Assembly (NCBI GenBank): GCA_002269645.1
Contig: NIVC01000157.1
Location: forward strand, 434,001 to 498,000
Direction of reading: 5' to 3'
Length of the DNA: 64,000 bases
DNA from: Macrostomum lignano
Taxonomy: Eukaryota
This document shows positions 1 to 31,770 of this stretch, in pieces (position 1 is the first letter of the stretch; every line of letters starts with the position of its first letter). A program made the position numbers and the translations under genes. The notes under the pieces are model-generated. The model was given only the letters and a program-made list of their open reading frames with translations. It ran no database searches and was not told the DNA's origin.

Positions 1-3000
1 GCAGGTTGGATCAAGTCTTAGTCTTGTGCCTTCAAACTCCAGCATGTCAGAAGCGGCATTCACCGCCTTCTGGATGGTGAGGATCTGCTGGGCAACAACG
101 GACAGCACTTCCAAGTCGATCCGGTTGAACTCGTCGAAGCAGGACCAGGCGCCGCACGAGGCGAGGCCTTTGAAAAATTTGCCCAGCGCAATGTAATCGA
201 GCCCGTCGGAACAGTTGAACACCACGCACTGCTTGGCCACCGCCTTTGCCAGATCTTTTGTGGTCTCCGTTTTTCCAGTGCCAGCTGGGCCCTCGGGCGC
301 TCCGCCCAGGTGCAGGTGCAGAGCGCCGAACAGGGTCCGGTAGCATCGGTCAGTCAGCGGCGTGATCACCAGCCGGCCGCTGTTGCCAAGGTACTCATAG
401 CCGTACCTCAGCATGGAGTTGATCATGCGAGTCTGCAGGTTATTATCCACCCAGTAGTAGCGTAGCTGACTCAGCCAGCTGAAGTCGTTCTCATGGCGTG
501 CTTCAACCTCGATGAGATGCGACAGGACGTCTCTAGCATGAACGTCGAGCACGATAAGCGCCTGCAGAGTTGTCCGGTTTTGTTTGGACAGTTTTCCGCG
601 AACCAGAGTTACAATCTCATCTATCTGGCTGTTGTTCTGCCTCAGGTATTCGGCCATTGCCTCGGGTCCAGCGCGCAGCGACTCGTGCACGCTGTTGGTC
701 CAGTATAGACAAGCGATGGCGAGCACCGCCTGACCCGGCCACTTTCGAACCCACTGGACTCGCTGTGTGTTATTGTAATCTTCCAATGCAGCCTGCGTTG
801 CCATGTGCACCGACTGCACCATGCCTCCCTCCAGTTCAAGAAGCCATTTCTCCACCTGACCGCGAGCCTTGGCCGTTGAAATGATCTCTTTGAGCTGCAC
901 AACCTCTCCTTCGGAGCTCTTCATGTGGGTGATGTCTAGAACTGGGGTGAACTCCAAACTAGATATGCCCTCGAAGCACTTCTTCAGGTGCGGCTGCACC
1001 CTGGTTGGGTCCTTGGTCTCGGACAGAATCTCTAACAGTTCGTCGTTGGAAAGAAAGAAGAAACGTGGAAAGAACAGCCTCTTCTTCTCCAGGTAGTCAT
1101 TTAGGCCTTTTTGGATCAGGTCGAGCAGTTCGTTAGACTTGTGAAGCCGCTCCAGCAGCTTTTCAATGAGGACAACTTGCATCACCCGCTTGTCGGAGAT
1201 GGCCGCTTTCATGATCTCGCGCCAGTTCTTGTCAACCGTGGTGAACCGGCGACCTTCCTCCGGCATCTGGGCCATGATGTCGGGCGAGCTGAAGATCGGC
1301 TCCAAGTAGAGCCAAGTTGCTTGCACCTTCAACCAATCGTCCAGCACGTCCTGTAGCAGAATCAACTTCTGCTCCCAGTCCTTTATCTCATTCTCAAAGG
1401 GCTTGATGAAAGGCGAGCCTCGCATAGTTTGAGTCTTCACGATGTGATCATCGAGCAGAATCTGGATGTCATCGATAGACGAAAGAATGTGAGTTCCGGT
1501 CTCTCTGTAGGGAATCATGACGAACTCGACCGTCTCCCACTCTGCTCGCATCTTGTTGAGCGTTTTCTCCAGATTGTACTCCTTTGTGGCGGCTTCGGAC
1601 ACCGTTTCAAATTTTTGCACGTAGGAGCCGAGGTTCATGGCAAGCAGCTTTGACAGGCTCATGTCTGAGTCCGGCTGCAGTGGACAGCCAATCATGTTGG
1701 ATATTTGGCGCCAGTGCCGGTTTCTCAAGCCCGGGTTGAACAGGCAGGAGATCAATGGCAGGTGCTCTTTGAATTCGTCAACCGATCGCGCATTCTGGCC
1801 GCCATTCGCTTTGCAGCCGGTACATCGTCCAGCACTTTCTCTAGCTTGTATAGCGAGCGCCAGATGCTGCTGACTTCGTCCGCAACAGTGTCCGGTATCA
1901 CGCCGGACATTGGGCCGTCCATCCATTCGCGACTCTTTCGCTGGAAGTCCACTGTAAGCTCGTAGAGTTGCTTGTAGGGTCGCAGAGCCGTCAGCAGCTG
2001 GACTCGCTGGGGGTAAGGCGTCGGCGGCCAACCGTAAGCCTCCTCTTCGGTATTCAGAGCCTCAACCTTCTCTGAGGCCGCCTCCAGTTGGCTGTTCAGC
2101 TTCTGCGCCTTCTCTAAATAGCGCGGCACCTGCGAGATGTCGGCAAAATTCTTGAACTCCTCCAATCGGCGCGCGTAGCTCTGCAGCTCGGCCGCAAACT
2201 GATCCCGCTTGAAGTGCAAGTTCTCTTGGAACTGGACACTTTTGTCCTTGAATATCGCTGCATGCTCATCGAACACGCTGGGCAGCCGAGCCTCCCAAGT
2301 GAAAACGGCGGCGTTCAGCTCCAAGTCGTGGTTAGCGAAGCTGACCCGCTCGATTAGGAACACAAGACGATCGCGGCTCTCGTCCAGCTGTTTAGTGATC
2401 TCAGCCATTGTCTCGGTGCGCGATTTTTCCACAAAGTCGCGCAGCTGCATCAGCTGGGCGGTGCTCGTTGGCAGGGTGAGCGCATTCTCGGCGATCTCCT
2501 CGTAGGTAGACACCAGCCGCTGGTTGCCAAGCCGGTGCAGGTCCATCATGCGGTTAAGGATGCGCTCGCAGAGAATGTCGGAGCGCTCGGTGAGTCCGTC
2601 AATCAGCTGCTGGCAGCGCATGTCGAACGTGCCAAATCGCTGCTGACGAACCGGTCCAGTCAGAGCTCGCTCTCCGAGACGGCGGTACTTCTTCAGCTCG
2701 CGCGACAGCTCGGCAAAGCTGGCACCATCGCTGATGTCGCCACCGGGTTCGCCTCGACGGTCGAGCAGCGCGGCAACCTCGCGCTCCGCCTGTTGCGTGA
2801 CCAGCGCGCCGTAGGCAGTCTCGAACTGGGCCACCTGACGACGCGGCGAGTCACCGTCGCGCTGAAGTGTCTCGGCAACTTGAGCCTTGTGCCACGGGAC
2901 CACCTCGTCGCCGAAGCAAGGCTGCAGTATTGAGGCATTGTCGATAGAATCGGGTCGCGGGATGGATGCCAGGACCGCTAGCGCGGTGTCGTAGATGGCG

Positions 3001-6000
3001 TGCAACCTCGTCACGAAGTCGTTCAAGCCTGGCTCCAAGCGGATGCGATCGTTGTCTAGGCGGCAGCGCAGGAAGAAGCCGGGATGTTCGTAGGCGAGCA
3101 CTGACGTCTGTGGCATGTTTCAAGGTTTGTTAGGCTCATAGTAAAGGGAAAAATAACACGTGTTTTGAGATTTTCTAAGACTCAACAGATTTCATTAAAA
3201 ATAAAAACCGCTCACCTTTGGCTGCACCAGCAGACTTGTCAGCTCCTCAATAGAGGCCAAGCCCATACTCTGCAGCTGCAGCGTCATAACGGTTGCTACG
3301 CAGTTGTTAAACGAGCGAAACAGTTCCGGGTCGCTAGGCACCTGACCATGCTTCTGGCCCCTGGCAACGAGGTGACGAATCTCCGGTACCCACCTTTAAA
3401 ATGAGATTAAAAATTCGTATTAAAAACTCTGAAAGATTCACATCTCAGTAATATTAAATTAGCCAGAAGTGACGCCGCACCACTTCACGAGACGCTCCCT
3501 GACCAGCTCGGTTTGCTTGGCGCAGTTGGCCTGAAATTTTCTCAACTCGAGCGGCTCCTGGCGGTTGCGAAACTGGCGAGTGTTGACGAGTCTCAGGTCG
3601 CTAAAATATTTTCGGACGATTGAGTTGAGCTGTAATTCGTGGATTATGGTTCACGTATGCTTCATCATGGCGCACTCGTACCTGAGAGAAATTTCTACGA
3701 ATTCTTGCGAATCATCTGGCGCTTGAACTCCGGATATTGCAGCAGCAATCGCTTCTGAGGCTGGCACCCTGTGAGAAACAGAGTTACTGTAGTTCTAAAT
3801 TAACTGGAGAATACGGTGTTGGATTCCAGTTAGTCCAAAGGACGACTCACTCTCGATTCATTCATTCATTTAATGGGTCCTCGTATGTTCAAAAATCTGA
3901 GCATACGAGTTAATAGTCAGTCAAGTCATTAGTCTGTAGTGACCTTCAGTGAACTTAGCTGTAAATTGGTTGCCAGCATTAGCCGTGGTAATTGAGGGTG
4001 CGTGTGTGTGGCGACCCCCCAGTCCTTGGACTGAACAGCCATACGCAGCCCCACCACTCGGATCAACCAGTGGGTGGCTTCAAAGCACAGGGAGAGGTGG
4101 GCTACACCCCCGACTGCCGGTAATCCCGCGCGGCTGTCCCCTGTCCTTCTGCCCTGCGCAGGGCCCTGCTTGGACTCAACCGCAGGGACATCAGGACGGT
4201 GACCATGGCCCTCTCGGGTCATGGCTGTTTTGCAAGGCATCGTCACCTCCAGCGAAAAATCGCAGTGAGGAATGCCATTCTGCCTCTCCGGTGTCGAGAC
4301 TGCGGAGCACTTCATCTGTGAATTACTCAAGGACAGGCTCACCGACCTCGGCCCAAACCCGGACCTCTCCGATGTTTTCAGGCCGAGAATCTCTGCCAGC
4401 TCGTCCGCTACCTAAGGGCTATCGGGCGAGCGACAATCCACCTCCTGGACTCTCAGGAGGGGGGCCGCGCTGCGGATACCGGCGCCACCGGATCTCCCTG
4501 CGCGACACCGCAGCACTAGCTGCCCGTGGTCGCCAGGGGCTAGCGAAATGGGCGGCAACGCCTCCTCGCTGTCTCCGGACGCACGGAGCCCCCTGCAGCT
4601 AAGTCAAGCCGTACGCAGTCTTCAGATGCGCCGCGCAATAGCTGCGGCAGAGCTGTTGGTTGCACATCTACCCATTGGGGCAGGTTTAATGAAAAAAAAC
4701 TACAAGATGCAGTGCGTCCCCTCCCACCAACTCACTGGACTCTCCGGTGCCAGACCTCGATCACCTGGCCCAGGCACGCGCTGGTGCAGTACAGCCTGTC
4801 CTCGATAAATCGGCGATTAATTTGAAAATCTCGCGCCCCAGGCCGAGGCGAAGTTCTCAACAGCTCCGGTGCAGTTTGCTCAGCCCCTGCAGACTCCAAC
4901 AGAGCCTCATCACTCTTAGCCCCCGGCTCGCGCAGCACAAAATCTACGATAGCCTGTTTCACGCCAGTCAGATAGTCGTCCCGAACTTCTTCTTGTAGAT
5001 CGGCCAGGAGTTCTTGGTAGGCCGGGATGCCTCGACCAGCGTCGCCGACAAACCCCATGATGTTGGTCATCCATGCTGGTTCCATTGGTGCCACGTGACG
5101 CGTGTCGATGCCGTGATGAATGTAGTAGTAGTATCGCTGAAGTTTTACGATAAAATTGCTTTGACTGATTTAAAAATATTATAGCTAGTTTATAACTATT
5201 TTTTATTCAATAGAAGTTTTTGTTCTAGCAGTGTCATAGACTGCAATTGTTGTGTCACAGACCACGATTGTTTGCAGACCACAATTGTTTACAGATTACG
5301 ATTGTATCACAGATTACGATTGTGTCATGATTGAGTCTCCGCCAATCAGCTGATTTAAAGAAGATTTAAAATAGGCATTACACAGATGTGATACAGATAG
5401 CATCGTGAAGGAGATTCGAACTCGCAGGGAGTCGGAACTCCATGGCAAATTCTATATTTTTATAGTTTGAGCAAACTGGAGATCTGAGTAGTGAACTCAC
5501 CAGCATATCCTTCTCCGTTGCTGACAAGCTAAAGTCTTCCCTTCGCAGAGCCTCCGCCGCTGTCGGGTTGAACTGCTTCTGATCACCCTGCCTGGAGAGG
5601 GCGCACAGAATTCAACAGTCAATAGGCAGAAGTACTCATAGATGTCATATAAATTTTCGCCTCTTACAGGATGATATCAACAAGAGCTTTCCGAAAGTGC
5701 TCTCTGTCGCGTTTGACTTGAGCTCGCAGTGAGCTGGCGTGACCCGAGCGTCTGCGGCGTCTTCTTGTGCTGGAATCCTCTGAATTAATTATGTTAATTA
5801 GGATAGGGGTAATGACTTGTAAGATTACGCTTCTTTGTTATACTTTTGTATGTTCAAATCCACGCCAAAATCTGACATTATCAATCAGCCTTTCAGCAAA
5901 TAGCGTGAAAAAATGCATTTTATGATTTAGTTAAATCAGTTTAAAAGATATTTTTGCGAGGTAGATAAAGTGACTTCTTATCCAGTGTCATTGAAATTTA

Positions 6001-8499: not shown

Positions 8500-9335
8500 A
8501 TAAGAGATACCCCAATGAAATTATCAGAGATACCCCAATGAGATTATCAGAGATTACAGAACGATATTATCAGAGATTACAGAACGAGATTATCAGAGAT
8601 TACAAAACGATATTATCAGAGTTTACAGAACGAGATTATCAGAGTTACAGAACGAGATTATCAGAGATTACAGAACGAGATTATCCGAGATTACAGAACG
8701 AGATTATCAGAGATTACAGAATGAGATTATCAGAGATTACAGAATGAGATTATCAGAGATACCCTATGAGATTATCAGAGATACCCAATGAGATTATCAG
8801 AGATACCCAATGAGATTATCAGAGATTGCAGAATGAGATTATCAGAGATTGCAGAATGACATTATCAGAGATTACAGAACGATATTATCAGAGATTACAG
8901 AATGAGATTATCAGAGATTACAGAACGAGATTATCAGAGATTACAGAACTAGATTATCAGAGATTACAGAATGAGATTATCAGAGATACCCTATGAGATT
9001 ATCAGAATACAATGAGGTTATCAGAGATTACAGACTGAAATATCAGAGATTGCAGAATGAGATTATTAGAGATTACAGAACGAGATTATCAGAGATTACA
9101 GAACGAGATTATCAGAGTTACAGAACGAGATTATCAGAGATTACAGAACGAGATTATCAGAGATTACATAATGAGATTATCAGAGATTACAGAACGAGAT
9201 TATCAGAGATTACATAATGAGATTATCAGAGATTACAGAACGAGATTATCAGAGATTACATAATGAGATTATCAGAGATTACAGAACGAGATTATCAGAG
9301 ATTACAGAATGAGATCATCAGATATATTAGAATGA
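8500..9335. repeat. Minisatellite, 23-bp unit GAGATTATCAGAGATTACAGAAC
   Basis: Tandem copies with point variants are directly visible. Confidence 0.95.
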
Positions 9336-10569
9336 GAGCCACAGTCAAAAATACAACTAGTAGCTCATAAGAGTCAAGTTTTTCGTCAGAGTCATTTTTG
9401 AGTCATTTCGCATCCCCCAAGGGAATCAATCTCTTTCACTTGCAGCAGTCCCCTTCTTCAACGGCCCCACATGCACTTAGCTATCTCCCAGATTTTCCTC
9501 GAAAGCCCCAGCCAGCCCATCAAGTTCCTCTTCAAGCCGTCCACATCAGCCAAATCCTCAATTCAAGATGAGCCAGCAATATAAGATGTACTTTTAGCGG
9601 ATTTCGACATCTCCTTGGCTTGCTGAGGTCATCTTATATTAATGAATTTGCAGCCTTGAGGTATTTTTAGCTTGCAAAAAATTTTCTAGGGTCAAAAATG
9701 AATCTTCATCCTTCTGATCCCGCATCAAGCATCGTCCCAAAAAACGTTGCCACCAGGGGATCGAGGCACGAGAGTCATGCAAAAACATGCAAAATCATAA
9801 CAGACAAAGTTCGTGTTTGTTTGTTTTTAAACTAAGCTTCAAAAACATTTTCGCACCCCTTTGGATGGCAATTGGATTAATAACGGAAAATTTTTTAATG
9901 CGGGACTCCAGTAACAGTGCATGCATGGATGCAGTGTCGGAACTGCTTTTCACTTCATTTTCCCGTGAGCCGCCTCACACCTTAGCGAGCCATTTTGCGC
10001 CCATCTCCATCCTGTCCACTTCACTTGGTGGTTCCGGAGCCCGCAGAACCCTCTCTGTGCACTCCTGCTGGCCCAAATCTCCACAGACCCCCCCCCTTGT
10101 CTTTCCATGCTCCCGAGCTCAGAATGCCTCTCTTCCTTGGCCTCCGCCCTCCCTGAGGATGCTGCACTGGGCTGAGCTCAGCGGCCCCCACTCCCCAAAA
10201 CGCTGGTCGATACGCCACTGAGCAGCTCAAACCGGACTGGAGCGGCCTCTCTCGTCTCTGAGGGGTGATGAGGGCGAGGAAGGGAGAGAAGGGAAGAGAG
10301 CGGAGAGTCTCCTTACTCCCGTCCCCAACACCTGAGTAGCCCTGTTTCTTCATCCCCAGAATCTCTTCCCGTTCTCTGCCCTCCGGTAATCCCCCATTTT
10401 CTCTCCCCCGCGCCGCATTTCCTTCCCTCTCCTCCTCTCTCCCCCAAGCCCCATCGCCATGCAGCAGCCCCCTACTCAAAACTTTGCGCACGAGAGAGAG
10501 AGAGAGAGTAAATGGATGGAGTAAAACAGGGCTCTGGCAGGAAGTTTCCCAGTCGCCATCGCGAATCAA

Positions 10570-11375: not shown

Positions 11376-11541
11376 TAAATCGGATTCACATAAGTAGTTT
11401 TCTGTGAAGGGGGGCACTTGGTTGCTAGTCGACTATGGTTGACTTGACAACCAAGTGTTGTCTGACGCAACTCCTCAAGCTTAACGATAAATTTCAATTC
11501 CTACTTTTTTGGACCTCCCTCCCGCCTTAAAGGTCACTGTG

Positions 11542-11656
11542 ATGAATTTTGGTGGAATTTTTGGCGGAAGCGGCGGCGCTGGAGGAGGAGGCGGCGGTTC
11601 GGGAACAAACCGCCCAGGCATGTCGATGGGCCCCGCCGGAGGCAGCGGCAGCGGAG

Positions 11657-11700
<44 letters not shown>

Positions 11701-14700
11701 TTTTTCGGGGAAGCCAGCAAGTTCTTCGGATCGGTGGCCGACTCGGTGACTGCCACGGTCACCGGTGACCATCACGGCAGGCCGCATCAGCAGCAGCCGC
11801 AGCAGCCGCAGATGATGGGCCGTGGCAGAGGCCAGATGACTCCTCAGCAGCAACAGCAGCAGCAGATGATGGGTGCCGGCCCCAGGCCCGCATGGCAACA
11901 ATCCGGAATGGGGAAGATGACTGGTGGCCCACCGGGATCACAGGTCTCGGGACAGATTGGTATAGGATCTCAGACCGGCCAGATGGGTATGGGATCTCAG
12001 AGTGGCCAGATGGGTATGGGATCTCAGAGTGGCCAGATGGGATCTCAATTTAGCCAGATGGGGTCTCAACCTGGACAACTATCATCGCAGCAAGGACAGA
12101 TGGGACCTCAGTCTGGTCAAATGGGATCTCAGCCAGGGCAGATGGGATCTCAGTTCGGCCAGGCGGGATCTCAATCTGGACAGATGGGATCTCAGCTCGG
12201 TCAGATGGGATCTCAATCTGGACAGATGATATCTCAGCCAGGCCAAATGGGACCTCAATCTGGACAAATGGGATCTCAGTACGGCCAGACGGGATCTCAG
12301 TTCGGCCAGATGGGATCTCAGCCTGGTCAGATGGGATCTCAGCCTGGACAGATGGGATCTCAGTTCGGCCAGATGGGATCTCAGCCTGGTCAGATGGGAT
12401 CTCAGTCTGGACAGATGGGATCTCAGTTCGGCCAGATGGGATCTCAGCCTGGTCAGATGGGATCTCAGTCTGGACAGATAGGATCTCAGCCAGGCCAAAT
12501 GGGATCTCAGTCTGGACAAATGGGATCTCAGTTCGGCCAAATGGGATCTCAGTCTGGTCAGATGGGATCTCAGTTCGGCCAGATGGGATCTCAGCCTGGT
12601 CAGATGGGATCTCAGCCTGGACAGATGGGATCTCAGTTCGGCCAGATGGGATCTCAGCCTGGTCAGATGGGATCTCAGTCTGGACAGATAGGATCTCAGT
12701 TCGGCCAGATGGGATCTCAGCTTGGTCAGATGGGATCTCAGCCTGGACAGATGGGATCTCATTTCGGCCAGATGGGATCTCAGCCTGGTCAGATGGGATC
12801 TCAGTCTGGACAGATAGGATCTCAGTTCGGCCAGATGGGATCTCAGCCTGGTCAGATGGGATCTCAGTCTGGACAGATGGGATCTCAGTTCGGCCAGATG
12901 GGATCTCAGCCTGGTCAGATGGGATCTCAGTCTGGACAGATGATATCTCAGCCAGGCCAAATGGGATCTCAATCTGGACAAATGGGATCTCAGTACGGCC
13001 AGACTGGATCTCAGTCTGGACAAATGGGATCTCAGTTCGGCCAGATGGGATCTCAGCTCGGCGGCCAAATAGGTATGGGATCTCAGGCTAATCAGTTCGG
13101 CCTGGGGGTGTCCCAGGCGAGCCAGATGGGCATGGGGGCGGCCGGCTCGCTGCCTTCGCATTTCGGCGCCAGTCGTTCGGAATTCGGCGGCTTGGACATT
13201 CAGCAGCAGCAGCAGCAGCAGCAACAGGATCTCGGAGCACTTGGCAGTCGCTACAACGAGTGCCGACCGACCTCGGACGAAATCTACGGCATTCGAAAGC
13301 GCTTCTCCTCCGGCGCCGCCGGCGTTGGCGACTATGGCGGAGGTGGCGGCTTTGGCGACTACGGCTCGAACCGGTTTGGCGGGCCCCTCGGCCAGCGACG
13401 AGCCTCGTTGTCCTACCAGAATGTCGCCGACTCGTCGAATCTCGGCGACTACGGCGGCGTCGGTAGGAGCTACGGCCTGGCACCTGGCTCGGCCGCTGAG
13501 CAGCAGCAGCTCGGCGGCGACCCTCTGACTGGCGGAGGCTCGTGGAACATGTCGAGTCTCTCGCGGGAGATTGTGGCAACCTACAGCCAAGGGCTGGGCT
13601 TGGACTCTGGTGGGTTTGACCAGCAACAACAGCAGCAGCAACAGCCGCAGCAGCAGCCCATGTTCAGCCAGGAGTTTCGCACCTACCAGCTGCCCGGCTC
13701 GCGCCTGAGCACCAGCGTGCTGCCGACCAGCTACGGCTCCGCCAGGTTCGAAGCCGGAGGTCCGCCGCCGTCGCAGCCGCAGCAGCAGCAGCAGGAGCGC
13801 TGGATGATGTCCGGAGGAGGCTTCGGTGGCCTCGGCGGCACCGACAGTTTAGCGCTGGTCCGCCGGCAGTCCTTGGCCGGCATGGACCCCCAGATGCAGC
13901 AGCTGGACGGCGGCCTCGGAGGTGTCGGTGGAGGCGGCGTCGGCGGATGGCGAGACGACGGCGGCTGGAATGTCGGCGGCGGCATCTCCGGGCCGATGAG
14001 TCTCGAATGGCAGAAGGCGGAGGACCTGAGTGACCCGGGCGTGCAGATGTGCCGCGAGTTCATGACCAAGTATGTGGATCTGGTCATCAATAGGAGGTGA
14101 GGACGGTTGAACAATGCTTAACTATTCTGCTATAAAAGTTCGGCAAAAGTTGATGACTAATCTGATCATTGCAGTCACATGATGGGTCAGCCGGACAAGG
14201 CCAACTTTTCAAGGATGTGTCAGGTGAGAAAATTTGATGTTGAAGTTAAAAATTGTGAATAAGATTCAGACGTCATTAAAATCTGTTTATTGAGAGACGC
14301 CGAAATCAGTTTATTGGTGGCGCCGAAATCAGTTTATTGGTGGTGCCGAAGTCGGTTTATTGGTGGCGCCGAAATCAGTTTATTGGTGGCGCCGAAGTCG
14401 ATTTTTTGGTGGCGCCGAAATCAGTTTATTGGTGGCGCCGAAATAAGTTTAAATGTGGCGCCAAAATCGGTTTATTGATGGCGCCGAAAGCGGTTTATTG
14501 GTGGCGCCGAAATCAGTTTATTGGTGGTGCCGAAATCGGTTTATTGGTGGCGCCGAAGTCGGTTTATTGGTGGCGCCGAAGTCGATTTTTTGGTGGCGCC
14601 GAAATCAGTTTATTGGTGGCGCCGAAATCAGTTTATTGGTGGCGCCGAAATCTGTTTAGTGAGAGGCGCCGAAATCTGTTTAGTGAGAGGCGCTAGAAAC

Positions 14701-17700
14701 AAATTTTTTGTCCATGAATCAGAATCCAGACGCCATCAAAATTGTCTATCGGTGGCGCCAAATGTTAAAACATCATCCTCTATTCCTTGATTTCAGAAGC
14801 TGCCAGGCCGAGTCTGGTTCGTCAAGGCTCTGGAGATGTACCAACAGCAGCAGCAGAGTCGCGGCATTGGAGGCGGCTTCGCCGACAGACTTGACGAGTC
14901 GGCCTTCTACGCCATGGCGCAGAGCCTGGCGGCTGCCCTGATGGAGTGCAGCCTCGCCGAGGACTGGCGCTCCGCCAGGGCTCTGCTGGATGCCTCCTTC
15001 GTGTTTTACACCAGTGAGCTGCCGCCGCTGCTGCCCGAGGCCACTCCTGGAAACCCTGGGACTCCTTTGTCATCCCTGACACCCACAGCTTTGTAGATCT
15101 GACACCCAAATCATCGCTAATCTTACACCCACAGCTTTGTAGATCTGACACCCAAATCATCGCTAATCTGACACCCACAGCTTTGTAGATCTGACACCCA
15201 AATCATCGCTAATCTTACACCCACAGCTTTGTAGATCTGACACCCAAATCATCGCTAATCTGACACCCACAGCTTGTAGATCTGACACCAAATCATCGCT
15301 ATTATGACACCCAATCATCGCTAATCTGACACCCAAATCATCGCTAATCTGACACCCAAAGCATCGCTAATCTGACACCTAAAGCATCGCTAATCTGACA
15401 CTCAAAGCATCGCTAATCTGACACTCAGAGCATCGCTAATCTGACACCTAATGCATCGTTAATCTGACACCCAAAGCATTGCTAATCTGACACCCAATGC
15501 ATCGCTAACCTGCACTCAAAGCTTCGCTAATCTGACACTCAGAGCATCGCTAATCTGACACTCAGAGCATCGCTAATCTGACACTCAGAGCATCGCTAAT
15601 CTGACACTCAGAGCATCGCTAATCTGACACCCAAATCATCGCTAATCTGACACTCAGAGCATCGTTAATCTGACACTCAGAGCATCGCTAATCTGACACT
15701 CAGAGCATCGTTAATCTGACACTCAGAGCATCGTTAATCTGACACTCAGAGCATCGCTAATCTGACACTCAGAGCATCGTTAATCTGACACTCAGAGCAT
15801 CGCTAATCTGACACTCAAAGCATCGTTAATCTGACACTCAGAGCATCGCTAATCTGACACTCAAAGCTTCGCTAATCTGACACTCAGAGCATCGCTAATC
15901 TGACACCTGACGCCCTGATCCCCCCAGTGCCATCGAACCAGTTCACCTCGGACCGCAAGACCTACCTGTACAACTACCTGAAGGACCAGGGCATCTGGCA
16001 GTCGCAGCGGTTCTGGACTGCCGCATTCGCCGACGCTCTCGAGGCCGAGCAGCGCTCCAGGTGGGGTCCCGGGCTGGGGACCGGTTCTCATGCGCATGTC
16101 GCTTACTTACAGTAGCATAATAAACAGCTTATAACAAATTTTTAAATTTTATGTATAAATAAGGAAAGAGTGAAATATTTCAGCACCAGGCGCGATTCTC
16201 TAACCCGTGAGATTCTCCAACCCGTGAGATTCTCCAACCCGTGAGATTCTCCAACCTATGAGATTCTCCAACCTATGAGATTCTCCAACCCGTGAGATTC
16301 TCCAACCTATGAGATTCTCCAACCTATGAGATCCTCCAACCCGTGAGATTCTCCAACCTATGATATTCTCCAACCTATGAAATCCTCCAAAACGTGCGAT
16401 TCTCCAACCCTTGAGATTCTCCAACCCGTGAGATTCTCCAACCCGTGAGATTCTCCTACCTATGAGATTCTCCAACCTATGAGATTCTCCAACCTGTGAG
16501 ATTCTCCAACCCGTGAGATTCTCCAACCTATGAGATTCTCCAACCTGTGAGATTCTCCAACCAATGAGATCCTCCAAAACGTGCGATTCTCCAACCCGTG
16601 AGATTCTCTAAACCCTGAGATTCTCCAACCCATGAGATTCTCCGACCTATGAGATCCTCCAAAACGTGAGATTCTTCAGCCCCATGAGAGTATCCAGCCA
16701 GTGAGATCCTCCAAACTATGAGATTCTCCAACCTGAGATTCTCCAGCCCGTGAGATTCTCCAACCTATGAGATTCTCCAACCTGAGATTCTCCAGCCCGT
16801 GAGATTCTCTAACCCATGAGATTCTCCAACCTATGAGATTATCCCCTTAAAAATTAATCTTCTTTCCCTTCTCCATATGAGATTATCTCCTTGAGCTGTG
16901 ATTCGTCTTTTAAGGATATTTTCACTAATCTTTATATTAAGGTTATCTCCAGCTTGTGAAGACTGGCTCTCAATGAGACTCGAATCTTCATTAGATTTCC
17001 ACTCATGAGATTCCCTAAATTGAAAACTTTCAGGACGGGGAGCTACGACCAGTCGTCGTACCGGATCACCGCCCTCATCAGGTGAGCTGAGATGCGCGTG
17101 TAATTATGGCATTATTTCGCTGAAATTGAAGTTTGTTCCTAAATACTTACGATCTAGATCTGGTAATGATTCGAGCAGCTTAGACTAAAGGGAACAATGG
17201 ATGCACACAGTTTTAGCATGTACTATGAGTAGCACAATGCGCGTTTTTAACATTATAAAAATTAGTGATAGACAGTAGCAAACAGTAACTATGATAATTT
17301 GCTAACTTTCCTGCTTTCGAAATCATATTGATCTTACTTTTTTATCATCGAGATAGGCAACGAATAAATAGATTTCCAGATTAAAAGTACAGACCAAGGG
17401 CTGTACTGCAGTTGATTTAGCATCACCTCAAATAAAAAGGTGCCCCCTCAGATGAAAAGGCGCCCCCCTCAGATGAAATGGCGCCCCCCTCAGATGAAAT
17501 GGAGCCCCCCTCAGATGAAATGGCGCCCCCTCAGATGAAATGGCGCCCCCTCAGATGAAATGGCGCCCCCTCAGATGAAATGGCGCCCCCTCAGATGAAA
17601 TGGCGCCCCCTCAGATGAAATGGCGTCCCATCAGATGAAATGGCGCCCCCCTCAGATGAAATGGCGCTCCCCTCAGATGAAATGGCGCCCCCTCAGATGC

Positions 17701-20398
17701 AAAGGAGCCCCCTCAGATGAAATGGCGCCCCCTCAGATGAAATGGCGCCCCCTCAGATGAAATGGCGCCACCCCTTAATGAAATGGCGCCCTTCTAAAGA
17801 GAAGAACTCTTAAATGAAGATTTGACTTACTGAATTACTTTGTGAACATTCAGCCTGCATGAAAGTTTGACATAATGATTATTCAGCCAATTAAAAAAGG
17901 CTTCAAAGTTGTTTAAACCTGAATGAAGCGCCTTGGAATTTTGAAGATGTTAATCTTTTTGAGAGCGTACGCTCTCTCTGTGCCTGTGCACCACTCGCTG
18001 TCAGTCCAGAAACATTCTTGACATCCTTAGTTACAGCCTCTGCCCCCGCAGCTGTTGTGTTTGACAAGACAAAACAGAATCGCCACTTTAATATTCTATT
18101 TGTTCGCATTAATTAGCGGCCCCAATGCCAGGCACCCGCTGTGCTGCGCCGCGTGAGGCCAAAACGCAGGCCGCATTGTGTCCGAAGAAAGAAACAACTT
18201 TAATGAACGGCAATTTTAATCAAGCCGGAGAGGGGGGCAGAGGACTCCCCAAGACTCTATCTTGGCTGCTTCAGAATCGGCAACTTATTATGAACTGCTT
18301 GTTTGTGAGTATTCTTCAAAGCCAGAAGGCAGGCAGTGTATAACCAGCTGCCTCTAAGGCCATGCAAAGAGGAGGGGAAAAGCAGAAGAAGAATATCCAG
18401 CTTTCAGCTTTGCCTGGGTAGCTGCGGAGAAAAAGCAGGTCCGCCTGACAATGCCGCTGCCCTGACGGCCACCCCAAGCCCACAACAGAGGAAGTGAAGG
18501 CAGCGGGGGGGACCGCCCTGAGTCAGCCCCGGCGCCCAACTCCGCCTCAGCAGCAGCGGCCAGCTCTCCGGAACGGGAAATTCTTGGCGTCGAAAAGTCT
18601 GCAAACTGTCTGCTTGAAGCGGCTGCTTCTGCTGCTGCTGCTGGCAGAAATTCTATTCAAATTAAGCTCAACCGTTCCACTCTTTGAGAGAGGCTGGTTG
18701 AGATGAAGATGAGGCTTCATTTATATATAGAAAAAGGTAACGCAGCTGCATCTGCGTTGCCACACAGAATTTCGGTTGAGAATGCTCCCGGCTCTGCAAA
18801 GCTCTTGAGCATTGACTGTGCTCACCTACGCGGATTGAGATGCAGTGTGCAGAGTTGAATTGAGTGAAGTATCAACCGAAATGTTTTCAGGGTTATTCAG
18901 AGTCAGATACTTCAAGTGACCTGGATTGGAAGCTCTGGCATCACCCGAGCAGCAATTTCGCAGATTGATTGACAATTTTCAAAAAATCATTGCCCTCGAT
19001 CTATTTTCAAATTGGAACTCAATTTGTTTAAATGCGTAAAATCAATCGCGCGATGCATTCGGAATCCATCAAGAAATGAAAAACGTAATATTTGTGCATA
19101 GTGAAACTTTCAGGCTTCAGTAAAATTGAAGGTTTTCTAGGGTAGAAATTTCCCTGAGTAATTATTGATTAAAAATTAAATTATAATTTTATGAGTTTTA
19201 GAGAAATCCAATTCTTCTGCGCGAAAATCAGCCGGGGTTGTCGTGCGAATCACAGAAATGAGGGCCAACCCCCAATGAGTGCGTGCCTTTGTGTACAGTA
19301 TTGGTGCGCCTGTACGCTTGAGAAGCATGTGCTCAGGCTAGGTGGTAATCAGCAAAATAGTTCTATTTATTTTGCTTATCCCTGTGTGCATGTGTTGATT
19401 GTGTATCGCACAAAAACTTCTGATTTTCCAAAGTTCTTATAAAGTTTCTGAAGCGACAGTGAGCCCTCCGCCCAAATGAATTCAACATTGCAGTTCGTTT
19501 GTCACCAAAATGCAAGGCCTCGAGCTGCGACGAGAAGTCATAGCTGACTTTGTTCGGAAACAGTGCGAGCTGCACCACATCTCGCCAGGTGAGTGTAGAT
19601 GCAGCAGTTGAAGGCAAACGGTTTTTTGGTGTCTTTCGGCTATTCTCTGCATGTGGTGTCTTTGGACGATTATCTGTGGTTTCTTTGGATGATTCTCTGT
19701 GATGTCTTTGGATGATTCTCTGTGGTTTCTTTGGATGATTCTCTGTGGTGTCTTTGGGCGATTCTCTGTAGTGTCTTTGGGCGATTGTCTGCAGTGTCCT
19801 TGGGCGATTCTCTGTGGTGTCCTTGGGCGATTGTCTGCAGTGTCCTTGGGCGATTCTCTGTAGTGTCTTTGGGCGATTGTCTGCAGTGTCCTTGGATGAT
19901 TCTCTGTGGTGTCTTTGGGCGACGATTTTATGTGGTGTCCTTGTGCGATTCTCTGTGGTGTCCTTGTGCGATTCTCTGTGGTGTCTTTGGACGATTGTCT
20001 GTGGTGTCTTTGGGCGATTCTCTGTGCTGTCTTTGGGCGATTTTCTGTGGTGTCTTTGGGCGATTGTCTGCAGTGTCCTTGTGCGATTTTCTGTGGTATC
20101 TTCGGGCGATTCTCTGTAGTGTCTTTGGGCGATTGTCTGCAGTTTTTTTGGGCGATTCTCTGTGTTGTCCTTGGGCGTTTCTCTGCAATGTCGTTGGGCG
20201 ATTCTCTGTGGTGTCTTTGGCCGGTTCTCCGAGCATCAATTAGAAGTTGTTTTGCACACGTAAATACGAATCAGCTGGAAACCCGTTTCTGCAATGCCGC
20301 CCGCAGACCAGCAGGCGATGCTGTTCCAGAGCTTGGACCGAATGGTCATGCCCAGCTATGGCGTATCCGGGATGTCATCCTCCCTACACCAGATGTGA
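11542..20398 (+). CDS. KIAA0513: KIAA0513-like protein (SBF2-type C-terminal domain) with a long N-terminal Gly/Gln/Ser/Met low-complexity repeat region, about 1062 aa
   Basis: Exons 11542-14096, 14175-14223, 14797-15013, 15928-16060, 17034-17081, 19494-19588 and 20307-20398. All introns are GT-AG, phases match, and the total is 3189 nt = 1063 codons ending in TGA. The spliced C-terminus reads CREFMTKYVDLV...GRVWFVKAL...ESAFYAMAQSLAAALMEC...DWRSARALL...KTYLYNYLKDQGIWQSQRFWTAAFADA...SFVTKMQGLEL...DFVRKQ. This is colinear with the KIAA0513 motifs as I recall them ([25 protein letters not shown]). Confidence 0.85.
11965..13075 (+). repeat. Coding 21-bp tandem repeat encoding GSQ[P/S/F/L/Y]GQM heptads, about 50 copies
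   Basis: In frame within the 863-aa ORF. Variation is concentrated at heptad position 4 and at synonymous sites. Confidence 0.95.
14296..14695. repeat. Intronic minisatellite, 23-bp unit GGCGCCGAAATCAGTTTATTGGT
   Basis: Tandem copies inside intron 14224-14796. Confidence 0.93.
15075..15905. repeat. Intronic minisatellite, 23-bp unit TCTGACACTCAGAGCATCGCTAA, with a longer composite unit at its 5' end
   Basis: Fills almost all of intron 15014-15927. Confidence 0.93.
16200..16840. repeat. Intronic minisatellite, 17-bp unit GAGATTCTCCAACC(CGT/TAT)
   Basis: Tandem copies inside intron 16061-17033. Confidence 0.93.
17440..17795. repeat. Intronic minisatellite, 20-21-bp unit TCAGATGAAATGGCGCCCCC
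   Basis: Tandem copies inside intron 17082-19493. Confidence 0.93.
19645..20220. repeat. Intronic minisatellite, 23-bp unit GGGCGATTCTCTGTGGTGTCTTT
   Basis: Fills most of intron 19589-20306. Confidence 0.92.
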
Positions 20399-22903: not shown

Positions 22904-23009
22904 CTACATATCACCTAGAAGAGTTTGACCTGTAGAATCCATGCCAGACTGAGCATAGTGCATTGTGTACATCTGCATGTGCATCTGGTTTAAGTCAACA
23001 AACGGATGT

Positions 23010-23045
<36 letters not shown>

Positions 23046-26000
23046 GCTGTCATGTACATCGGGTGCCAATGCGCCTGCTGGGCCAGCTGTTGATGCTGAA
23101 TGTCGGGGTGATAACCAGACGGCAAGTAGCCAGGAGGCTGATGATAAGCCTGCTGATGCTGATAGTGCAACTCAGACTCGTCCAGCTGATGCAGCGGCTG
23201 ACTCTGGGCCGCATAAACTGCCCCCGGTTGCTGAGCAACCGCTGGAGCTGGCGGAGCCGATGCTGGCTGCTGCTGTTGGCCTGCTGTCACCACCGCTGCT
23301 GCAGCCGCAGCCGCAGCAGCAGCAGCCACCGCGTAACGATCCTGCCGCTTCACCAGCGTCTTAGCCTTGCGCCTCGGCCGGTACTTGTAGTCCGGATGGT
23401 CCTTCATGTGCATCGCGCGCAGACGTTTCGCTTCGTCGATGAATGGCCGCTTCTCGGACTCGGAGAGGCTCTTCCAGTCCGAGCCCAGGCGCTTGCTGAT
23501 CTCCGAGTTGTGCATCTTCGGGTTCTCCTGGGCCATCTTGCGGCGCTGGCCCCGGCTCCACACCATGAAGGCGTTCATCGGGCGTTTGACACGGTCCTCG
23601 AGCTTGGCGGTTGTCGGAACTTGCTGCTGCTGCTGCTGCTGCTGCTGCTGGGGCTGCGGCGGCAGCTGCTGGTGCTGGTATTGCTGCTGTTTTCCCGTTG
23701 TAGCGAACTGGACAAAAAATCAATGGAGAAGATTGGCAATATAAATCATCTCATTTTTATTAGTGCAACAACTTCTCTTGTACAAATTTTTATGAAACCT
23801 CATTGTAGCACCACCATTCGGGCCAATAATGGCAAATGTCAATAAATTACAAAGGTGTCTCAAAAGAAACGTTGGTGCCAGCACCAAGGGGCGCCAGCAC
23901 CAAGGGGCGCCAGCACCAAGGGGCGCCAGCACCAAGGGGCGCCAGCACCAAGGGGCGCCAGCACCAAGGGGCGCCAGCACCAAGGGGCGCCAGCACCAAG
24001 GGGCGCCAGCACCAAGGGGCGCCAGCACCAAGGGGCGCCAGCACCAAGGGGCGCCAGCACCAAGGGGCGCCAGCACCAAGGGGCGCCAGCACCAAGGGGC
24101 GCCAGCACCAAGGGGCGCCAGCACCAAGGGGCGCCAGCACCAAGGGGCGCCAGCACCAAGGGGCGCCAGCACCAAGGGGCGCCAGCACCAAGGGGCGCCA
24201 GCACCAAGGGGCGCCAGCACCAAGGGGCGCCAGCACCAAGGGGCGCCAGCACCAAGGGGCGCCAGCACCAAGGGGCGCCAGCACCAAGGGGCGCCAGCAC
24301 CAAGGGGCGCCAGCACCAAGGGGCGCCAGCACCAAGGGGCGCCAGCACCAAGGGGCGCCAGCACCAAGGGGCGCCAGCACCAAGGGGCGCCAGCACCAAG
24401 GGGCGCCAGCACCAAGGGGCGCCAGCACCAAGGGGCGCCAGCACCAAGGGGCGCCAGCACCAAGGGGCGCCAGCACCAAGGGGCGCCAGCACCAAGGGGC
24501 GCCAGCACCAAGGGGCGCCAGCACCAAGGGGCGCCAGCACCAAGGGGCGCCAGCACCAAGGGGCGCCAGCACCAAGGGGCGCCAGCACCAAGGGGCGCCA
24601 GCACCAAGGGGCGCCAGCACCAAGGGGCGCCAGCACCAAGAGCTACTGGCAAATTAAACAAGTTTGTGGTCAATCTGCTCGTCCGCGACTGTTTGGTACA
24701 TTACTGGAATTTTACTAGCGAGCCCTCTGAACCGAAAATAGGCTCAACTATTTCATTTCTTACCTACCAAACAAGCCTTGAGGGCAAATTTGTCCACATG
24801 CAGCCCCATGGACTCTATATAAGACCCAATTATCATACTCATTGATTCGATTCAACCACCACTGTGAGTAGAGCAGTGAGTAATCGGATTTGGGCTTGCC
24901 CGCCAACGCGCCCAGCTGCGGCATATAGGCTGGTTGCTAGGGCCCCAACACCTGCGCGTGTCACCTGCCTCCTCCCTCCTCCGCTCCCTTATTAGCTATG
25001 GGGATTGTAGCAGTTCGGTCCTCGGGCTTCGCCAGGTAATATTAGGAACTCGAATTTCTAATTCATTCTCCCACTCTCGAACCACTCCAGTGTAACCAGG
25101 GCATCACGTGCAGCACATAGCGACACATAGCGAAGCTTCGATTTGAGGCTTGGCAACACTCCACGCTGTACCCATACTAGTTATGTCACAGTCTTATTTC
25201 AAGCATTATCGATTTGTTCATATATTGTACGTTTTTAACATCCAGTTGTGTATGTATAATAAAGGTAATAGACATCCTCGAACTGTAAAAATATTAACAA
25301 AATCTTAATTAATAACTGTGGTCATTGAATAGAACCCGAACCGAAAAAAATGGAGCAAATAGGTTTGAGAAGTGACAGGGATACCAAGTGAGAGTGACCG
25401 GGATTCCAGGTGGGGAGTGACCGGGATTCAAGGTGAGAGTGAGGTCCGGGATTCCAGGTGAGTGACCGGGATCCCAGGTGAGAGTGAACGGGATTCCAGG
25501 TGGGGAGTGACCGGGATTCCAGGTGGGGAGTGACCGGGATTCCAGGTGAGAGTGACCGGGATTCCAGGTGGGGAGTGACCGGGATTCCAGGTGGGGAGTG
25601 ACCGGGATTCCAGGTGAGAGTGACCGGAATTCCAGGTGGGGAGTGACCGGGATTCAAGGTGAGAGTGAGGTCCGGGATTCCAGGTGAGTGACCGGGATCC
25701 CAGGTGAGAGTGACCGGGATTCCAGGTGAGAGTGACCGGAATTCCAGTTGGGGAGTGACAGGGATTCCAGGTGGGGAGTGACCAGGATTCCAGGTGGGGA
25801 GTGACCGGGATTCCAGGATCCAGGTGCGAGTGACCGGGATTCCAGGTGGGGAGTGACCGGATTTCCAGTTGGGGAGTGACAGGGATTCCAGGTGAGAGTG
25901 ACCGGGATTCCAGGTGGGGAGTGACCGGGATTCCAGGTGAGAGTGACAGGGATTCCAGGTGAGAGTGACCGGGATTCCAGGTGGGGAGTGACCGGGATTC

Positions 26001-31274: not shown

Positions 31275-31770
31275 ACGCCCACCGAGAGCCAGGGGGCGCT
31301 CACCGAGAGCCAGGGGGCGCTCACCGAGAGCCAGGGGGCGCCCACCGAGAGCCAGGGGGCGCCCACCGAGAGCCAGGGGGCGCCCACCGAGAGCCAGGGG
31401 GCGCCCACCAAAAGACAGGGGGAACCCACCGAGAGCCAGGGGGCGCTCACCGAGAGCCAGGGGCGCTCACCGAGAGCCAGGGGGCGCTCACCGAGAGCCA
31501 GGGGGCGCTCACCAAAAGACAGGGGGCGCAACCGAGAGCCAGGGGGCGCTCACCAAAAGACAGGGGGCGCCACCGAGAGCCAGGGGGCGCTCACCAAAAG
31601 ACAGGGGGCGCCACCAAGAGCCAGGGGGCGTCACCAAAAGACAGGGACGCCACCAAGAGACAGGGGCGCCACCAAGAGACAGGGGCGCCCACCGAGAGCC
31701 AGGGGGCGCTCACCGAGAGCCAGGGGGCGCTCACCGAGAGCCAGGGGGCGCTCACCAAGAGACAGGGGGC
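31275..31770. repeat. Minisatellite, 21-bp unit CACCGAGAGCCAGGGGGCGC(T/C)
   Basis: Directly visible. Confidence 0.92.

Follow-up and report, generated by a model that had tools for sequence, protein, structure and literature searches.

Vertebrate KIAA0513 proteins are 411 to 425 aa long and carry a C-terminal SBF2-type helical domain, preceded by a disordered region of ~100 aa that is acidic, Ser-rich and 22% charged and contains no tandem repeat; DENN, PH-GRAM and phosphatase domains are absent. The zebrafish member of the family is the SBF1/2-domain protein Krang, and maternal-effect mutants of krang/kiaa0513 are defective in cortical-granule function and chorion elevation (PMC11302925). 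The Macrostomum lignano protein described here has the same type of domain at its C terminus (~30% identity to the eel protein P0037), likewise lacks DENN, PH-GRAM and phosphatase domains and likewise has a disordered region ahead of the domain. In contrast to the vertebrate proteins, it is predicted to be 1062 aa long, of which 825 aa precede the domain, and only 6.5% of the residues in this pre-domain region are charged. Tapeworm orthologues (Hymenolepis microstoma CDS26871.1, 863 aa; Echinococcus multilocularis CUT99494/5, 862/835 aa) share with it an MNFGxFF start, poly-Gly before an FxxxSKxFxS motif, the C-terminal domain and a very long disordered pre-domain region (624 to 650 aa), but their linkers are 26 to 28% charged, non-repetitive, contain a PRPPRPPPP motif and lack the GSQxGQM unit found here. 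Fluke orthologues are much shorter (464 to 529 aa).

Invertebrate orthologues as a whole range from 395 to 863 aa, each with a disordered pre-domain region of 100 to 650 aa, and the premise of an earlier note on this DNA, that KIAA0513 proteins are ~400 aa long and lack such a region, holds for vertebrates only. Among 74 complete homologues, the pre-domain region has a median length of 174 aa and a maximum of 650 aa, against 825 aa here, and charged residues make up 22 to 31% of it in relatives. Judged by these comparisons, what is new in the M. lignano protein is the length, composition and repeat of the pre-domain region; the extension itself is not new. The earlier note had claimed a novel protein architecture and had named in advance, as a finding that would count against it, the same extension in orthologues. 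The extension is present in relatives, and that claim falls.

Gene model and domain organization

The locus is the M. lignano orthologue of the conserved KIAA0513/Krang gene, and it lies in a window (the whole stretch of DNA analyzed) of 64,000 nucleotides. A seven-exon GT-AG model reads in frame over a total of 3189 nt and predicts a protein of 1062 aa; five of the six introns start with GTGAG and the other with GTGGG. The features of the model, in window coordinates, are as follows.

11499..11533, + strand: pyrimidine-rich tract ending in AG, ttcctacttttttggacctccctcccgccttaaAG/gtcactgtgATG, 8 nt 5′ of the ATG
11542..14096, + strand: exon 1, aa 1-852, ATG-initiated, phase 2 end; 2555 nt open frame up to the GT donor at 14097
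11542..11700, + strand: MNFGGIF start then poly-Gly, aa 1-53, by comparison with tapeworm and fluke orthologue starts
11701..11766, + strand: family N-terminal motif FFGEASKFFGSVADSVTATVTG, aa 54-75, from a profile of 15 orthologues and alignment A1
11767..12039, + strand: Q/P/M-rich tract, aa 76-130, then degenerate GMGSQxGQM nonamers, aa 131-166
12040..13068, + strand: coding minisatellite of 49 x 21 bp, GSQxGQM heptads, aa 167-509, no indel
13069..14001, + strand: post-array G/Q/S/Y/F-rich low-complexity region, aa 510-820, from composition and AlphaFold2
14002..14096, + strand: start of the SBF2-type helical domain, from ~aa 821, within exon 1, from AlphaFold2 and homologue alignments
14175..14223, + strand: exon 2, AG/GT borders, in frame
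14797..15013, + strand: exon 3, AG/GT borders, identical to UniProt A0A1I8HS21
15928..16060, + strand: exon 4, with the most conserved family motif QGIWQSQRFWTAAF
17034..17081, + strand: exon 5, AG/GT borders, gap-free against flatworm orthologues
19494..19588, + strand: exon 6, in the gene model and the flatworm alignment
20307..20398, + strand: exon 7, TGA stop at 20396-20398

UniProt A0A1I8HS21 (P0001), a 119-aa M. lignano protein, is identical across exons 3 and 4 and spans their junction, and the exon 4-5-6 joins align to flatworm orthologues without gaps. The joining of exon 1 to exons 2 to 7 and the use of the ATG at 11542 are predicted from homology and frame; both the N terminus and the last ~30 aa of exon 1 align with regions conserved in the family. 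We infer that the tract at 11499..11533 is a candidate 3′ splice acceptor or spliced-leader trans-splice acceptor; trans-splicing occurs in 38.8% of M. lignano genes (PMC5730564). Looking up the exon 1 product as an exact protein sequence gave no record. Word-indexed homologue searches with the C-terminal domain or with all of exon 1 gave no matches, a weak negative in that the identical A0A1I8HS21 was also missed. M. lignano may carry paralogues with a different array copy number.

The 244-aa C-terminal query matched Pfam SBF2 (PF12335) at 30.1 bits over its residues 82 to 227 (gathering cut-off, 22.1). The best non-self matches among the 154 homologues found are named KIAA0513 or KIAA0513-like (33 to 40% identity) and carry the domain C-terminally, in agreement with the KIAA0513-type gene first proposed. 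The top KIAA0513 matches (E of 1e-28 to 1e-20) align up to their C terminus; a protein combining DENN and SBF2 (P0103) matched far more weakly (E = 6.5e-6). No further Pfam family, whether DENN, PH-GRAM, phosphatase or F-BAR, was found in the 818-aa N-terminal and 244-aa C-terminal queries, which span the whole protein. AlphaFold2 places helices from residue 821 (pLDDT 76 to 98), and a model of the spliced C terminus that includes the exon 1-derived residues reached a pLDDT of 89.6 and a pTM of 0.85. Homologue alignments start at residues 8 to 22 of the 244-aa query, and the conserved domain begins inside exon 1, at ~aa 821 to 826. The repeat exon is in frame with the domain, as had been claimed, but the domain begins within that exon and not only after the splice. 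A PDB sequence search found no informative relative, and Foldseek with the confident domain model matched only generic helical repeats (best E = 0.02, TM < 0.31).

At the other end of exon 1, poly-Gly (aa 8-53) precedes FFGEASKFFGSVADSV (aa 54-69), with QQP/M tracts following at aa 76-130. Tapeworm orthologues begin MNFGSFF or MNFGNFF and have poly-Gly at this place; flukes begin MSFGNFL. A profile of 15 orthologues, with the window protein left out, ranked the exon 1 ORF first among 1792 six-frame pieces, at an E value of 0.014 that is weak alone. The position of the N-motif in exon 1 (M-x-F..., then [SF]F..[TA]S.[FL]F.S[VMI]...) is consistent with the family, and Ser59, Phe62 and Ser64 are invariant in a nine-sequence alignment (A1). 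When the N-terminal and post-array segments were compared by BLAST with 159 homologue sequences, nothing significant was returned, and the N-motif was found only by the dedicated profile. This alignment and profile assign the MNFG start, the poly-Gly tract and the FFxxxSKxFxS motif to an N terminus that belongs to the family itself and that tapeworm orthologues also have. The FFGEASKFFGSV stretch, which the earlier note had set apart as helix-like, is together with the preceding poly-Gly this conserved N terminus, and AlphaFold2 predicts no helix for the motif here. Because a conserved family N terminus stands ahead of the array, the architecture is orthologous; the scaffold once thought to be fused to a KIAA0513 module is not a fusion, and its N terminus is orthologous to that of the tapeworm relatives. 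Docking of the N-motif onto the domain was considered and rejected, as full-length AlphaFold2 leaves aa 1-818 unstructured, the motif included. No signal peptide was seen by inspection: the N terminus, MNFGGIFGGSGGAGGGG..., lacks a hydrophobic core and corresponds to the conserved N-terminal motif of the family.

The KIAA0513/Krang plan comprises a short N-terminal motif, a disordered linker of variable length and a C-terminal all-helical SBF2-type domain. All three parts are colinear here, and exon 1 runs from the N-motif through the entire linker into the first helices of the domain.

The heptad array and its flanks

Exon 1 (11542-14096) contains the poly-Gly, QQP/M tracts, heptads and G/Q/S/Y-rich tail originally described, and its 852 codons include 223 for Gly, 166 for Gln, 116 for Ser and 68 for Met. 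Within it, 49 contiguous units, each exactly 21 bp, encode G-S-Q-x-G-Q-M (12040-13068), preceded by three GMGSQxGQM nonamer variants; the ~50 heptads first counted resolve into these 49 strict units, to which three to four degenerate units at the edges are added. Position 4 of the heptad reads FPQSPFSLSPSYFPPFPSFPS..., reflecting a 63-bp F-P-S higher-order unit, and Tandem Repeats Finder reported periods of 42 and 63 on the array (scores near 1200) and a 27-bp period at 11953-12041. Across the window there are 49 occurrences of the 21-bp pattern, always in or just before the array, against 0.05 expected by chance. The 343-aa block is 29% Gln, 28% Gly, 18% Ser and 12% Met (41 Met) and contains no Asp, Glu, Lys or Arg; both the near absence of charge and the F-P-S cycling noted earlier are borne out. 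It has 13 Phe, with aromatics mostly spaced 21 to 35 residues apart; each 21 residues hold three Met and about one Phe. Lys and Arg are absent from all 379 residues of aa 131-509, and the 825-aa pre-domain region contains 57 SQ dipeptides.

Over its 1029 bp the array shows neither an indel nor a frame break. Its core consists of near-identical 63-bp units and its edges of degenerate ones. In all, 10 pairs of 63-bp triplets are identical and one exact repeat spans 126 bp; the near-identity of the core indicates recent expansion or homogenization. A variant run, ISQPGQM-GxQSGQM-GSQYGQT, is present twice, 34 units apart. Third codon positions hold 56 of the 74 minor-allele counts outside codon 4 (exact permutation p = 0.005, a test that overstates independent events because the units are non-independent and variants are copied along with them), and codon changes are 35 synonymous versus 13 non-synonymous. 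This third-position excess suggests that the array is translated and its peptide constrained. An antisense ORF of 519 aa (12082-13641, minus strand) was rejected as a candidate gene product: it is open only because the unit lacks stops in that frame, and it has the variable sites at first codon positions. GSQxGQM heptads occur in none of 196 homologues, and a heptad-only query against 5.8 billion protein clusters found no match (best E = 0.24), in keeping with the lineage-specific array first suggested.

From the array end to aa 825, the sequence is G/Q/S/Y-rich. Residues 510-820 contain poly-Q runs, GDYGG motifs and RRxS sites, are predicted to be disordered and have no Pfam match; AlphaFold2 gave a pLDDT below 50 and no secondary structure for aa 1-818. 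A profile of the acidic, Ser-rich pre-domain motif of the family (SSxxEYGG ... SWxSSxSxDSQxDE) misses exon 1, its best window matches lying elsewhere at E values of at least 0.3. As this motif is not detectably retained, ancestral short motifs may be missing from the linker. The GDYGG and RRQS strings were dropped as candidate retained family motifs, since the pre-domain profile misses exon 1 and the GDYGG likeness is loose and visual only.

Comparison with other repeat and low-complexity proteins

Abductin (Met/Phe), high-molecular-weight glutenin and spider flagelliform silk (Gln/Pro) are made of short Gly-rich units encoded by in-frame tandem DNA repeats, and are secreted, often cross-linked structural materials. 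Like these elastomeric proteins, the array is likely turn-rich and without stable structure. Unlike them, the M. lignano protein has no signal peptide and carries a conserved C-terminal SBF2-type helical domain. A second likeness is to the Met-rich prion-like domains of yeast Pbp1/ataxin-2 and of TDP-43, which, as the array, are Q/G/S-rich, charge-poor and Met-dense. The heptad block falls within the composition used to define such domains (Q/N/S/G-rich, charge-poor, at least five clustered Met), its 41 Met in 343 aa (~12%) standing against a proteome mean near 2% and a census minimum of 5 (PMC9312190). The Pbp1/ataxin-2 and TDP-43 domains are irregular and long conserved, with droplets and redox response shown experimentally, whereas the M. 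lignano array is young and a near-perfect tandem repeat.

Nup98-type FG domains and the engineered GLFG52x12 (PMC9918544, PMC8938434) resemble the array in their dozens of short regular repeats, predicted disorder and FG dipeptides set in uncharged G/S/Q-rich spacers. In contrast, Phe recurs only once per 21 to 35 residues in the array against one FG cluster per ~12 residues in Nup98-type domains, and the array has no Leu-Phe cluster and no nuclear-pore anchoring domain. In Nup98-type domains, each added spacer residue raises the saturation concentration 3- to 5-fold (PMC9918544). By this published rule, the array would gain very little cohesion from FG motifs alone, and the Phe spacing rules out membership among cohesive, FG-nucleoporin-like repeats. 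With at least three S/T-Q per 100 residues, the sequence also classes as an SQ/TQ cluster, a definition that more than 25% of yeast proteins satisfy (PMC3564818).

Origin of the array and its possible role

Tandem repeats abound in the M. lignano genome (PMC5730564), and 33 tandem arrays with a median length of 496 bp cover 28.8% of the window. With tandem arrays over so much of the window, the simplest account of the heptad array is a coding minisatellite: its 21-bp units run head to tail, are a multiple of three in length and show no frame-breaking indel, and the array sits within an ORF flanked by the family N-motif and the SBF2-type domain. We propose that the linker reached ~750 aa and lost nearly all its charge chiefly by in-frame expansion of this 21-bp minisatellite with its 63-bp higher-order unit, along with GC-rich triplet runs (poly-Gly, poly-Gln). 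The route would be replication slippage or unequal exchange, the same process to which the introns of the gene and 29% of the window would owe their arrays of 11- to 40-bp units. Such expansion would be tolerated because it occurred in a disordered region and by a unit divisible by three. The third-position excess would then mark a translated array whose G-S-Q-x-G-Q-M peptide is under purifying selection. Both conserved ends would keep their ancestral job, probably in secretory-granule or vesicle biology given the zebrafish krang mutants and the SBF2 domains of DENN- and F-BAR-containing proteins. The heptad block would most likely be an uncharged, compact, weakly self-attracting disordered tether, with Met and sparse Phe as sticky residues and Gly, Ser and Gln as spacers, altering how far the protein reaches and how concentrated it is locally, and adding no new catalytic or binding activity. 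Taken whole, this explanation of a KIAA0513/Krang orthologue with ancestral ends, a minisatellite-expanded, constrained linker and a tether-like heptad block is the one we hold to be reasonably probable. The functional role that it gives the array is putative, and a tolerated passenger would give the same sequence picture.

Such a passenger, with the array and its flanking poly-G/poly-Q as by-products of tandem-repeat dynamics and no selected function, is somewhat unlikely in our judgment, though much is consistent with it: the other minisatellites of the window have similar unit and array sizes, the core units are near-identical down to whole 63-bp triplets and the 126-bp exact repeat, no part of the family proteins is less conserved than the linker (~100 to 650 aa) and the heptads occur in no other organism among the homologues and protein clusters searched. 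The third-position bias and the preponderance of synonymous changes argue instead for selection on the peptide, but the same signal would equally be expected from selection against harmful variants without any positive function. The G/Q/M-rich, charge-poor composition also reaches well past the young array on both sides, which indicates that this compositional regime predates the latest expansion. A prion-like or elastomeric scaffold, as the earlier note envisaged, would instead drive condensates of the KIAA0513 module, with ATM/ATR phosphorylation at SQ sites or Met oxidation as the switch. The uncharged composition of the block fits Met-rich prion-like domains, which are reported to undergo redox-controlled droplet formation by reversible Met oxidation (PMC9312190); redox-controlled Met-rich droplets are likewise reported in PMC7682574 and PMC8394241, and the formal SQ/TQ-cluster definition (PMC3564818) applies. 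Yet that definition is non-specific, SQ is inherent to the repeat unit with Gly at -1, aromatics come only every 21 to 35 residues, and the family is tied to granule or vesicle biology and not to DNA damage, all of which makes the scaffold improbable. We are more doubtful still that the array may be a selected, "designer-like" cohesive domain that condenses the KIAA0513/Krang orthologue on secretory or cortical granules and is dissolved by Met oxidation or Ser phosphorylation.

The remaining alternatives concern the product and the assembly. The repeat could lie outside the main product if a downstream trans-splice site or start codon (e.g., Met819) or an internal intron were used. Several trans-splice sites are found in 7% of M. 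lignano transcripts (PMC5730564), in-frame Met codons lie 3′ of the array, and the sole public protein model of the gene covers exons 3 and 4 only. However, the genome annotation deliberately dropped transcripts that overlap repeat annotations (PMC5730564), which may account for the fragmentary model. The family N terminus lies 5′ of the array and reaches the domain solely by in-frame read-through, and the third-position bias is a sign that this frame is translated; we rate exclusion of the repeat as no more credible than the condensate scaffold. An internal intron removing the array was rejected, as exon 1 has no GTRAG donor and its weak GTATG sites do not share a frame with the pyrimidine-rich acceptors. 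Mis-assembly of a real array, such that the figure of 49 units is wrong, would be favored by core units that are near-identical over hundreds of bases in a genome hard to assemble for its simple repeats and duplications (PMC5730564). Against this stand the ordered internal structure, diverged edges, repeated variant run and unbroken frame, and we consider it the least probable reading; a wrong number would in any case leave the nature of the feature unchanged.

The gene model is improved to 1062 aa from a 119-aa fragment, for which no longer public counterpart from M. lignano was found, and the three-part KIAA0513/Krang architecture had previously not been made explicit for invertebrates. The array is a real lineage-specific oddity with a putative function and not a new protein architecture: a repeat-rich genome has remade a charged polyampholyte linker into an uncharged G/Q/S/M tract while frame and peptide were kept. 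If the array is not functional, it cautions against reading function into low-complexity exons of repeat-rich genomes. If it is functional, it would offer a naturally regular sequence in which to study Met- and Phe-mediated cohesion, in an animal with RNAi and transgenesis. Were the cohesive-domain reading true, the poorly understood KIAA0513 family would gain a lineage-specific, switchable self-assembly module.

A KIAA0513/Krang orthologue with a repeat-expanded linker

The locus is an orthologue of KIAA0513/Krang in which both conserved ends are intact and the linker, the disordered sequence between the N-terminal motif and the C-terminal SBF2-type domain, is repeat-expanded and charge-free. 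Exon 1 is a single open frame of 2555 nt, running from the ATG at 11542 to 14096 (+) with a GTGAGG donor directly after it. The frame is kept through six more exons with AG/GT borders to a TGA at 20396-20398, giving a predicted product of 1062 aa.

Translated segments of exon 1 and the remaining exons of the gene model (all + strand; exons 2 to 7 with AG/GT borders)
Exon 1: MNFGGIF, then poly-Gly, aa 8-53
Exon 1: FFGEASKFFGSVADSVTATVTG, aa 54-75
Exon 1: Q/P/M tract, aa 76-130
Exon 1: three GMGSQxGQM nonamer variants between the Q/P/M tract and the heptads
Exon 1: 49 contiguous G-S-Q-x-G-Q-M heptads, aa 167-509
Exon 1: G/Q/S/Y/F-rich stretch of 316 aa after the heptads
14175-14223: exon 2
14797-15013: exon 3
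15928-16060: exon 4
17034-17081: exon 5
19494-19588: exon 6
20307-20398: exon 7, with the TGA at 20396-20398

The earlier note had read a single exon carrying near-charge-free heptads, and both points hold: the 49 units, each exactly 21 bp, span 12040-13068, and their translation (Q 29%, G 28%, S 18%, M 12%, P 5%, F 4%) contains no charged residue. A 63-bp higher-order unit sets TTCGGC, CCTGGT and TCTGGA in turn, placing F, P and S at position 4. Chance predicts 0.05 occurrences of the 21-bp pattern in the window; 49 were found, all within the array or immediately before it.

Pfam SBF2 (PF12335) matches the C-terminus above its curated cut-off, and an exhaustive HMMER search that took the last 244 aa as query returned 154 homologues (an M. 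lignano fragment of identical sequence plus 153 relatives). A word-indexed search with the same domain returned no match, so its negatives are not readable as absence for M. lignano. The best non-self homologues (33-40% identity), from nemerteans, molluscs, annelids, brachiopods, insects and priapulids, bear the NCBI name "uncharacterized protein KIAA0513(-like)", in line with the KIAA0513-type identity given in the earlier note. Family members have 464-529 aa in flukes (Schistosoma, Fasciola, Opisthorchis and others) and 835-863 aa in tapeworms (Hymenolepis, Echinococcus). SBF2 is the sole domain of KIAA0513 homologues, with DENN or F-BAR domains added in remoter matches, and neither sequence nor fold search found a solved structure like it. 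The only genetic evidence found in a literature search for the family concerns zebrafish krang (kiaa0513), a maternal-effect gene required for cortical-granule function and chorion elevation (PMC11302925).

The top HMMER match, A0A1I8HS21 (119 aa, M. lignano, "SBF2 domain-containing protein"), is identical to the window over exons 3-4, their junction included, and ends ...RSRWG by running past the exon 4 donor (CAG|GTGGGG; 15928-16066) without splicing to exon 5. Thus the protein found for this gene in public data is a fragment, its model both truncated and mis-ended, perhaps because the M. lignano annotation explicitly discarded transcripts overlapping repeat annotations (PMC5730564). The splice model proposed here is supported by AlphaFold2 (31 homologues), which predicts an all-helical domain for the spliced C-terminus (pLDDT 89.6, pTM 0.85), and by a gap-free alignment with flatworm orthologues over the exon 4/5/6 joins. 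A pyrimidine tract with AG at 11499-11541, 8 nt upstream of the ATG, resembles a 3' splice or spliced-leader acceptor; its use would leave a 5' UTR of only 8 nt after trans-splicing.

Matches to other gene families lie elsewhere in the window. About 2.5 kb downstream of the KIAA0513 stop, tail-to-tail with it, lies a SOX-type transcription factor gene (22904-23700, -; HMG box 88.5 bits, SOXp region present) carrying poly-Ala and poly-Gln runs. A 559-aa single-exon ORF (39678-41357, -) matches the rhodopsin-family receptor model 7tm_1 (101 bits) and has a long third intracellular loop. A 454-aa ORF (1752-3116, -), matching dynein heavy chain N-terminal region 2 barely over cut-off (32.9 bits), probably represents a single exon of a dynein heavy chain gene extending beyond the window.

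Orthology of the N-terminal region

The earlier note had proposed a scaffold fused to a KIAA0513 module, a reading that fails on both sides of the supposed join. Homologue alignments begin at residues 8-22 of the 244-aa query, and the first domain helices, predicted with high confidence by AlphaFold2 at aa 821-850, lie inside exon 1; repeat and domain start are therefore joined by plain reading, with no splice. At the other end, tapeworm proteins start MNFGSFF or MNFGNFF, fluke proteins MSFGNFL and the M. lignano protein MNFGGIF; tapeworms carry poly-Gly in the same position, and all three share the motif [SF]F..[TA]S.[FL]F.S[VMI]..K.... A profile of this motif built from 15 orthologues, with the window's own protein left out, ranked exon 1 first among 1792 six-frame window pieces (E=0.014, weak alone, with position and context right). 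Long disordered pre-domain regions are also normal in the family (median 174 aa in 74 complete homologues, up to 650). Domain start, family N-terminus and this length range together show, through alignment and structure prediction, that the N-terminal region is orthologous. The premise of proteins about 400 aa long with no such region therefore fits vertebrate KIAA0513 only. In tapeworms the region reaches 624-650 aa. Neither SQxGQ nor any notable tandem repeat occurs in the 196 homologous sequences.

Origin and constraint of the heptad array

The M. lignano pre-domain region is the longest among those compared (825 aa), with 6.5% charged residues, 27% G, 20% Q and 8% M against 22-31%, 4-15%, 2-7% and 1-4% in every orthologue examined. 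The best match to the heptads alone among 5.8 billion protein clusters had E=0.24, and a profile search detected no trace of the family's acidic, Ser-rich pre-domain motif in the M. lignano protein. A short open piece in intron 5, GYSESDTSSDLDWKLWH (18864-18965, +), weakly resembles that Ser/Asp-rich motif (E=0.34), probably by chance, as its location is wrong. In the full-length AlphaFold2 model, aa 1-818 lack secondary structure and stay under pLDDT 50. Charge-hydropathy reasoning predicts a compact disordered globule for such an uncharged polar tract, and a more expanded state for the charged linkers of the orthologues.

Tandem arrays abound here: 33 of them (units 4-40 bp, mostly 11-40 bp; median length 496 bp, maximum 1470 bp) cover 28.8% of the window, among them 8514-9337, 14279-14682, 15076-15907, 16194-16844, 23877-24640 (a 16-mer, 47.8 copies, 100% matches), 25371-26840 and 46248-47487. 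Introns 2, 3, 4, 5 and 6 of the KIAA0513 gene hold one each, and 15% of the M. lignano genome consists of simple and tandem repeats (PMC5730564). Such arrays, read in open frames, account for many of the window's long "ORFs". The unit of another 21-bp minisatellite, CGCTCACCGAGAGCCAGGGGG (31276-31771, 24 copies), is likewise a multiple of three and leaves two + frames open. The heptad array itself has typical minisatellite anatomy, with diverged units at either edge, a homogenized core (10 identical 63-bp triplet pairs and a 126-bp stretch repeated exactly 273 bp away) and two copies of the variant block ISQPGQM-GxQSGQM-GSQYGQT, 34 units apart. In the simplest account, the 21-bp unit would have grown in frame, by slippage or unequal exchange, within a host linker already G/Q/M-rich.

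Several features of the sequence favor an array that is translated and whose peptide is under selection. There is no indel in its 1029 bp; 56 of 74 minor-allele counts occupy third codon positions in the heptad frame (codon 4 excluded; exact permutation p=0.005) and 35 codon changes from the consensus of each unit type are synonymous against 13 non-synonymous, the units in both counts not being independent. No GTRAG donor was found in exon 1 (the gene's introns begin GTGAG in five of six cases and GTGGG in the other), and its weak GTATG sites do not keep the frame when paired with the few pyrimidine-rich acceptors. A 519-aa antisense ORF over the array was rejected as coding: variable sites would be first codon positions in its frame, which is open only because the 21-bp unit lacks stops there.

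Possible roles of the linker

We propose that the conserved ends would keep an ancestral role, likely granule- or vesicle-related, and that the array would serve as a tether, flexible yet compact and weakly self-attracting, in which Met, at three in every 21 residues, and Phe, at roughly one in 21-35, would be the sticky residues. A stronger claim, that it is a prion-like, cohesive or SQ-regulated module, is possible but unsupported. By the criteria of PMC9312190, the heptad composition agrees with prion-like domains rich in Met. Cohesive FG domains, in which saturation concentration rises 3-5-fold per added spacer residue (PMC9918544), carry Phe at a much higher density. The SQ-cluster definition is non-specific and covers the array trivially (PMC3564818). 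A serious rival to the tether is that the array is a tolerated passenger. From the earlier interpretation, a KIAA0513-type gene with lineage-specific heptads survives; the fusion, and the 400-aa premise beyond vertebrates, do not.

The feature is a lineage-specific, minisatellite-built low-complexity linker within an otherwise orthologous KIAA0513 gene. The 1062-aa model improves on the existing model of this M. lignano gene, and its linker is an example of disordered regions remodelled by repeats.
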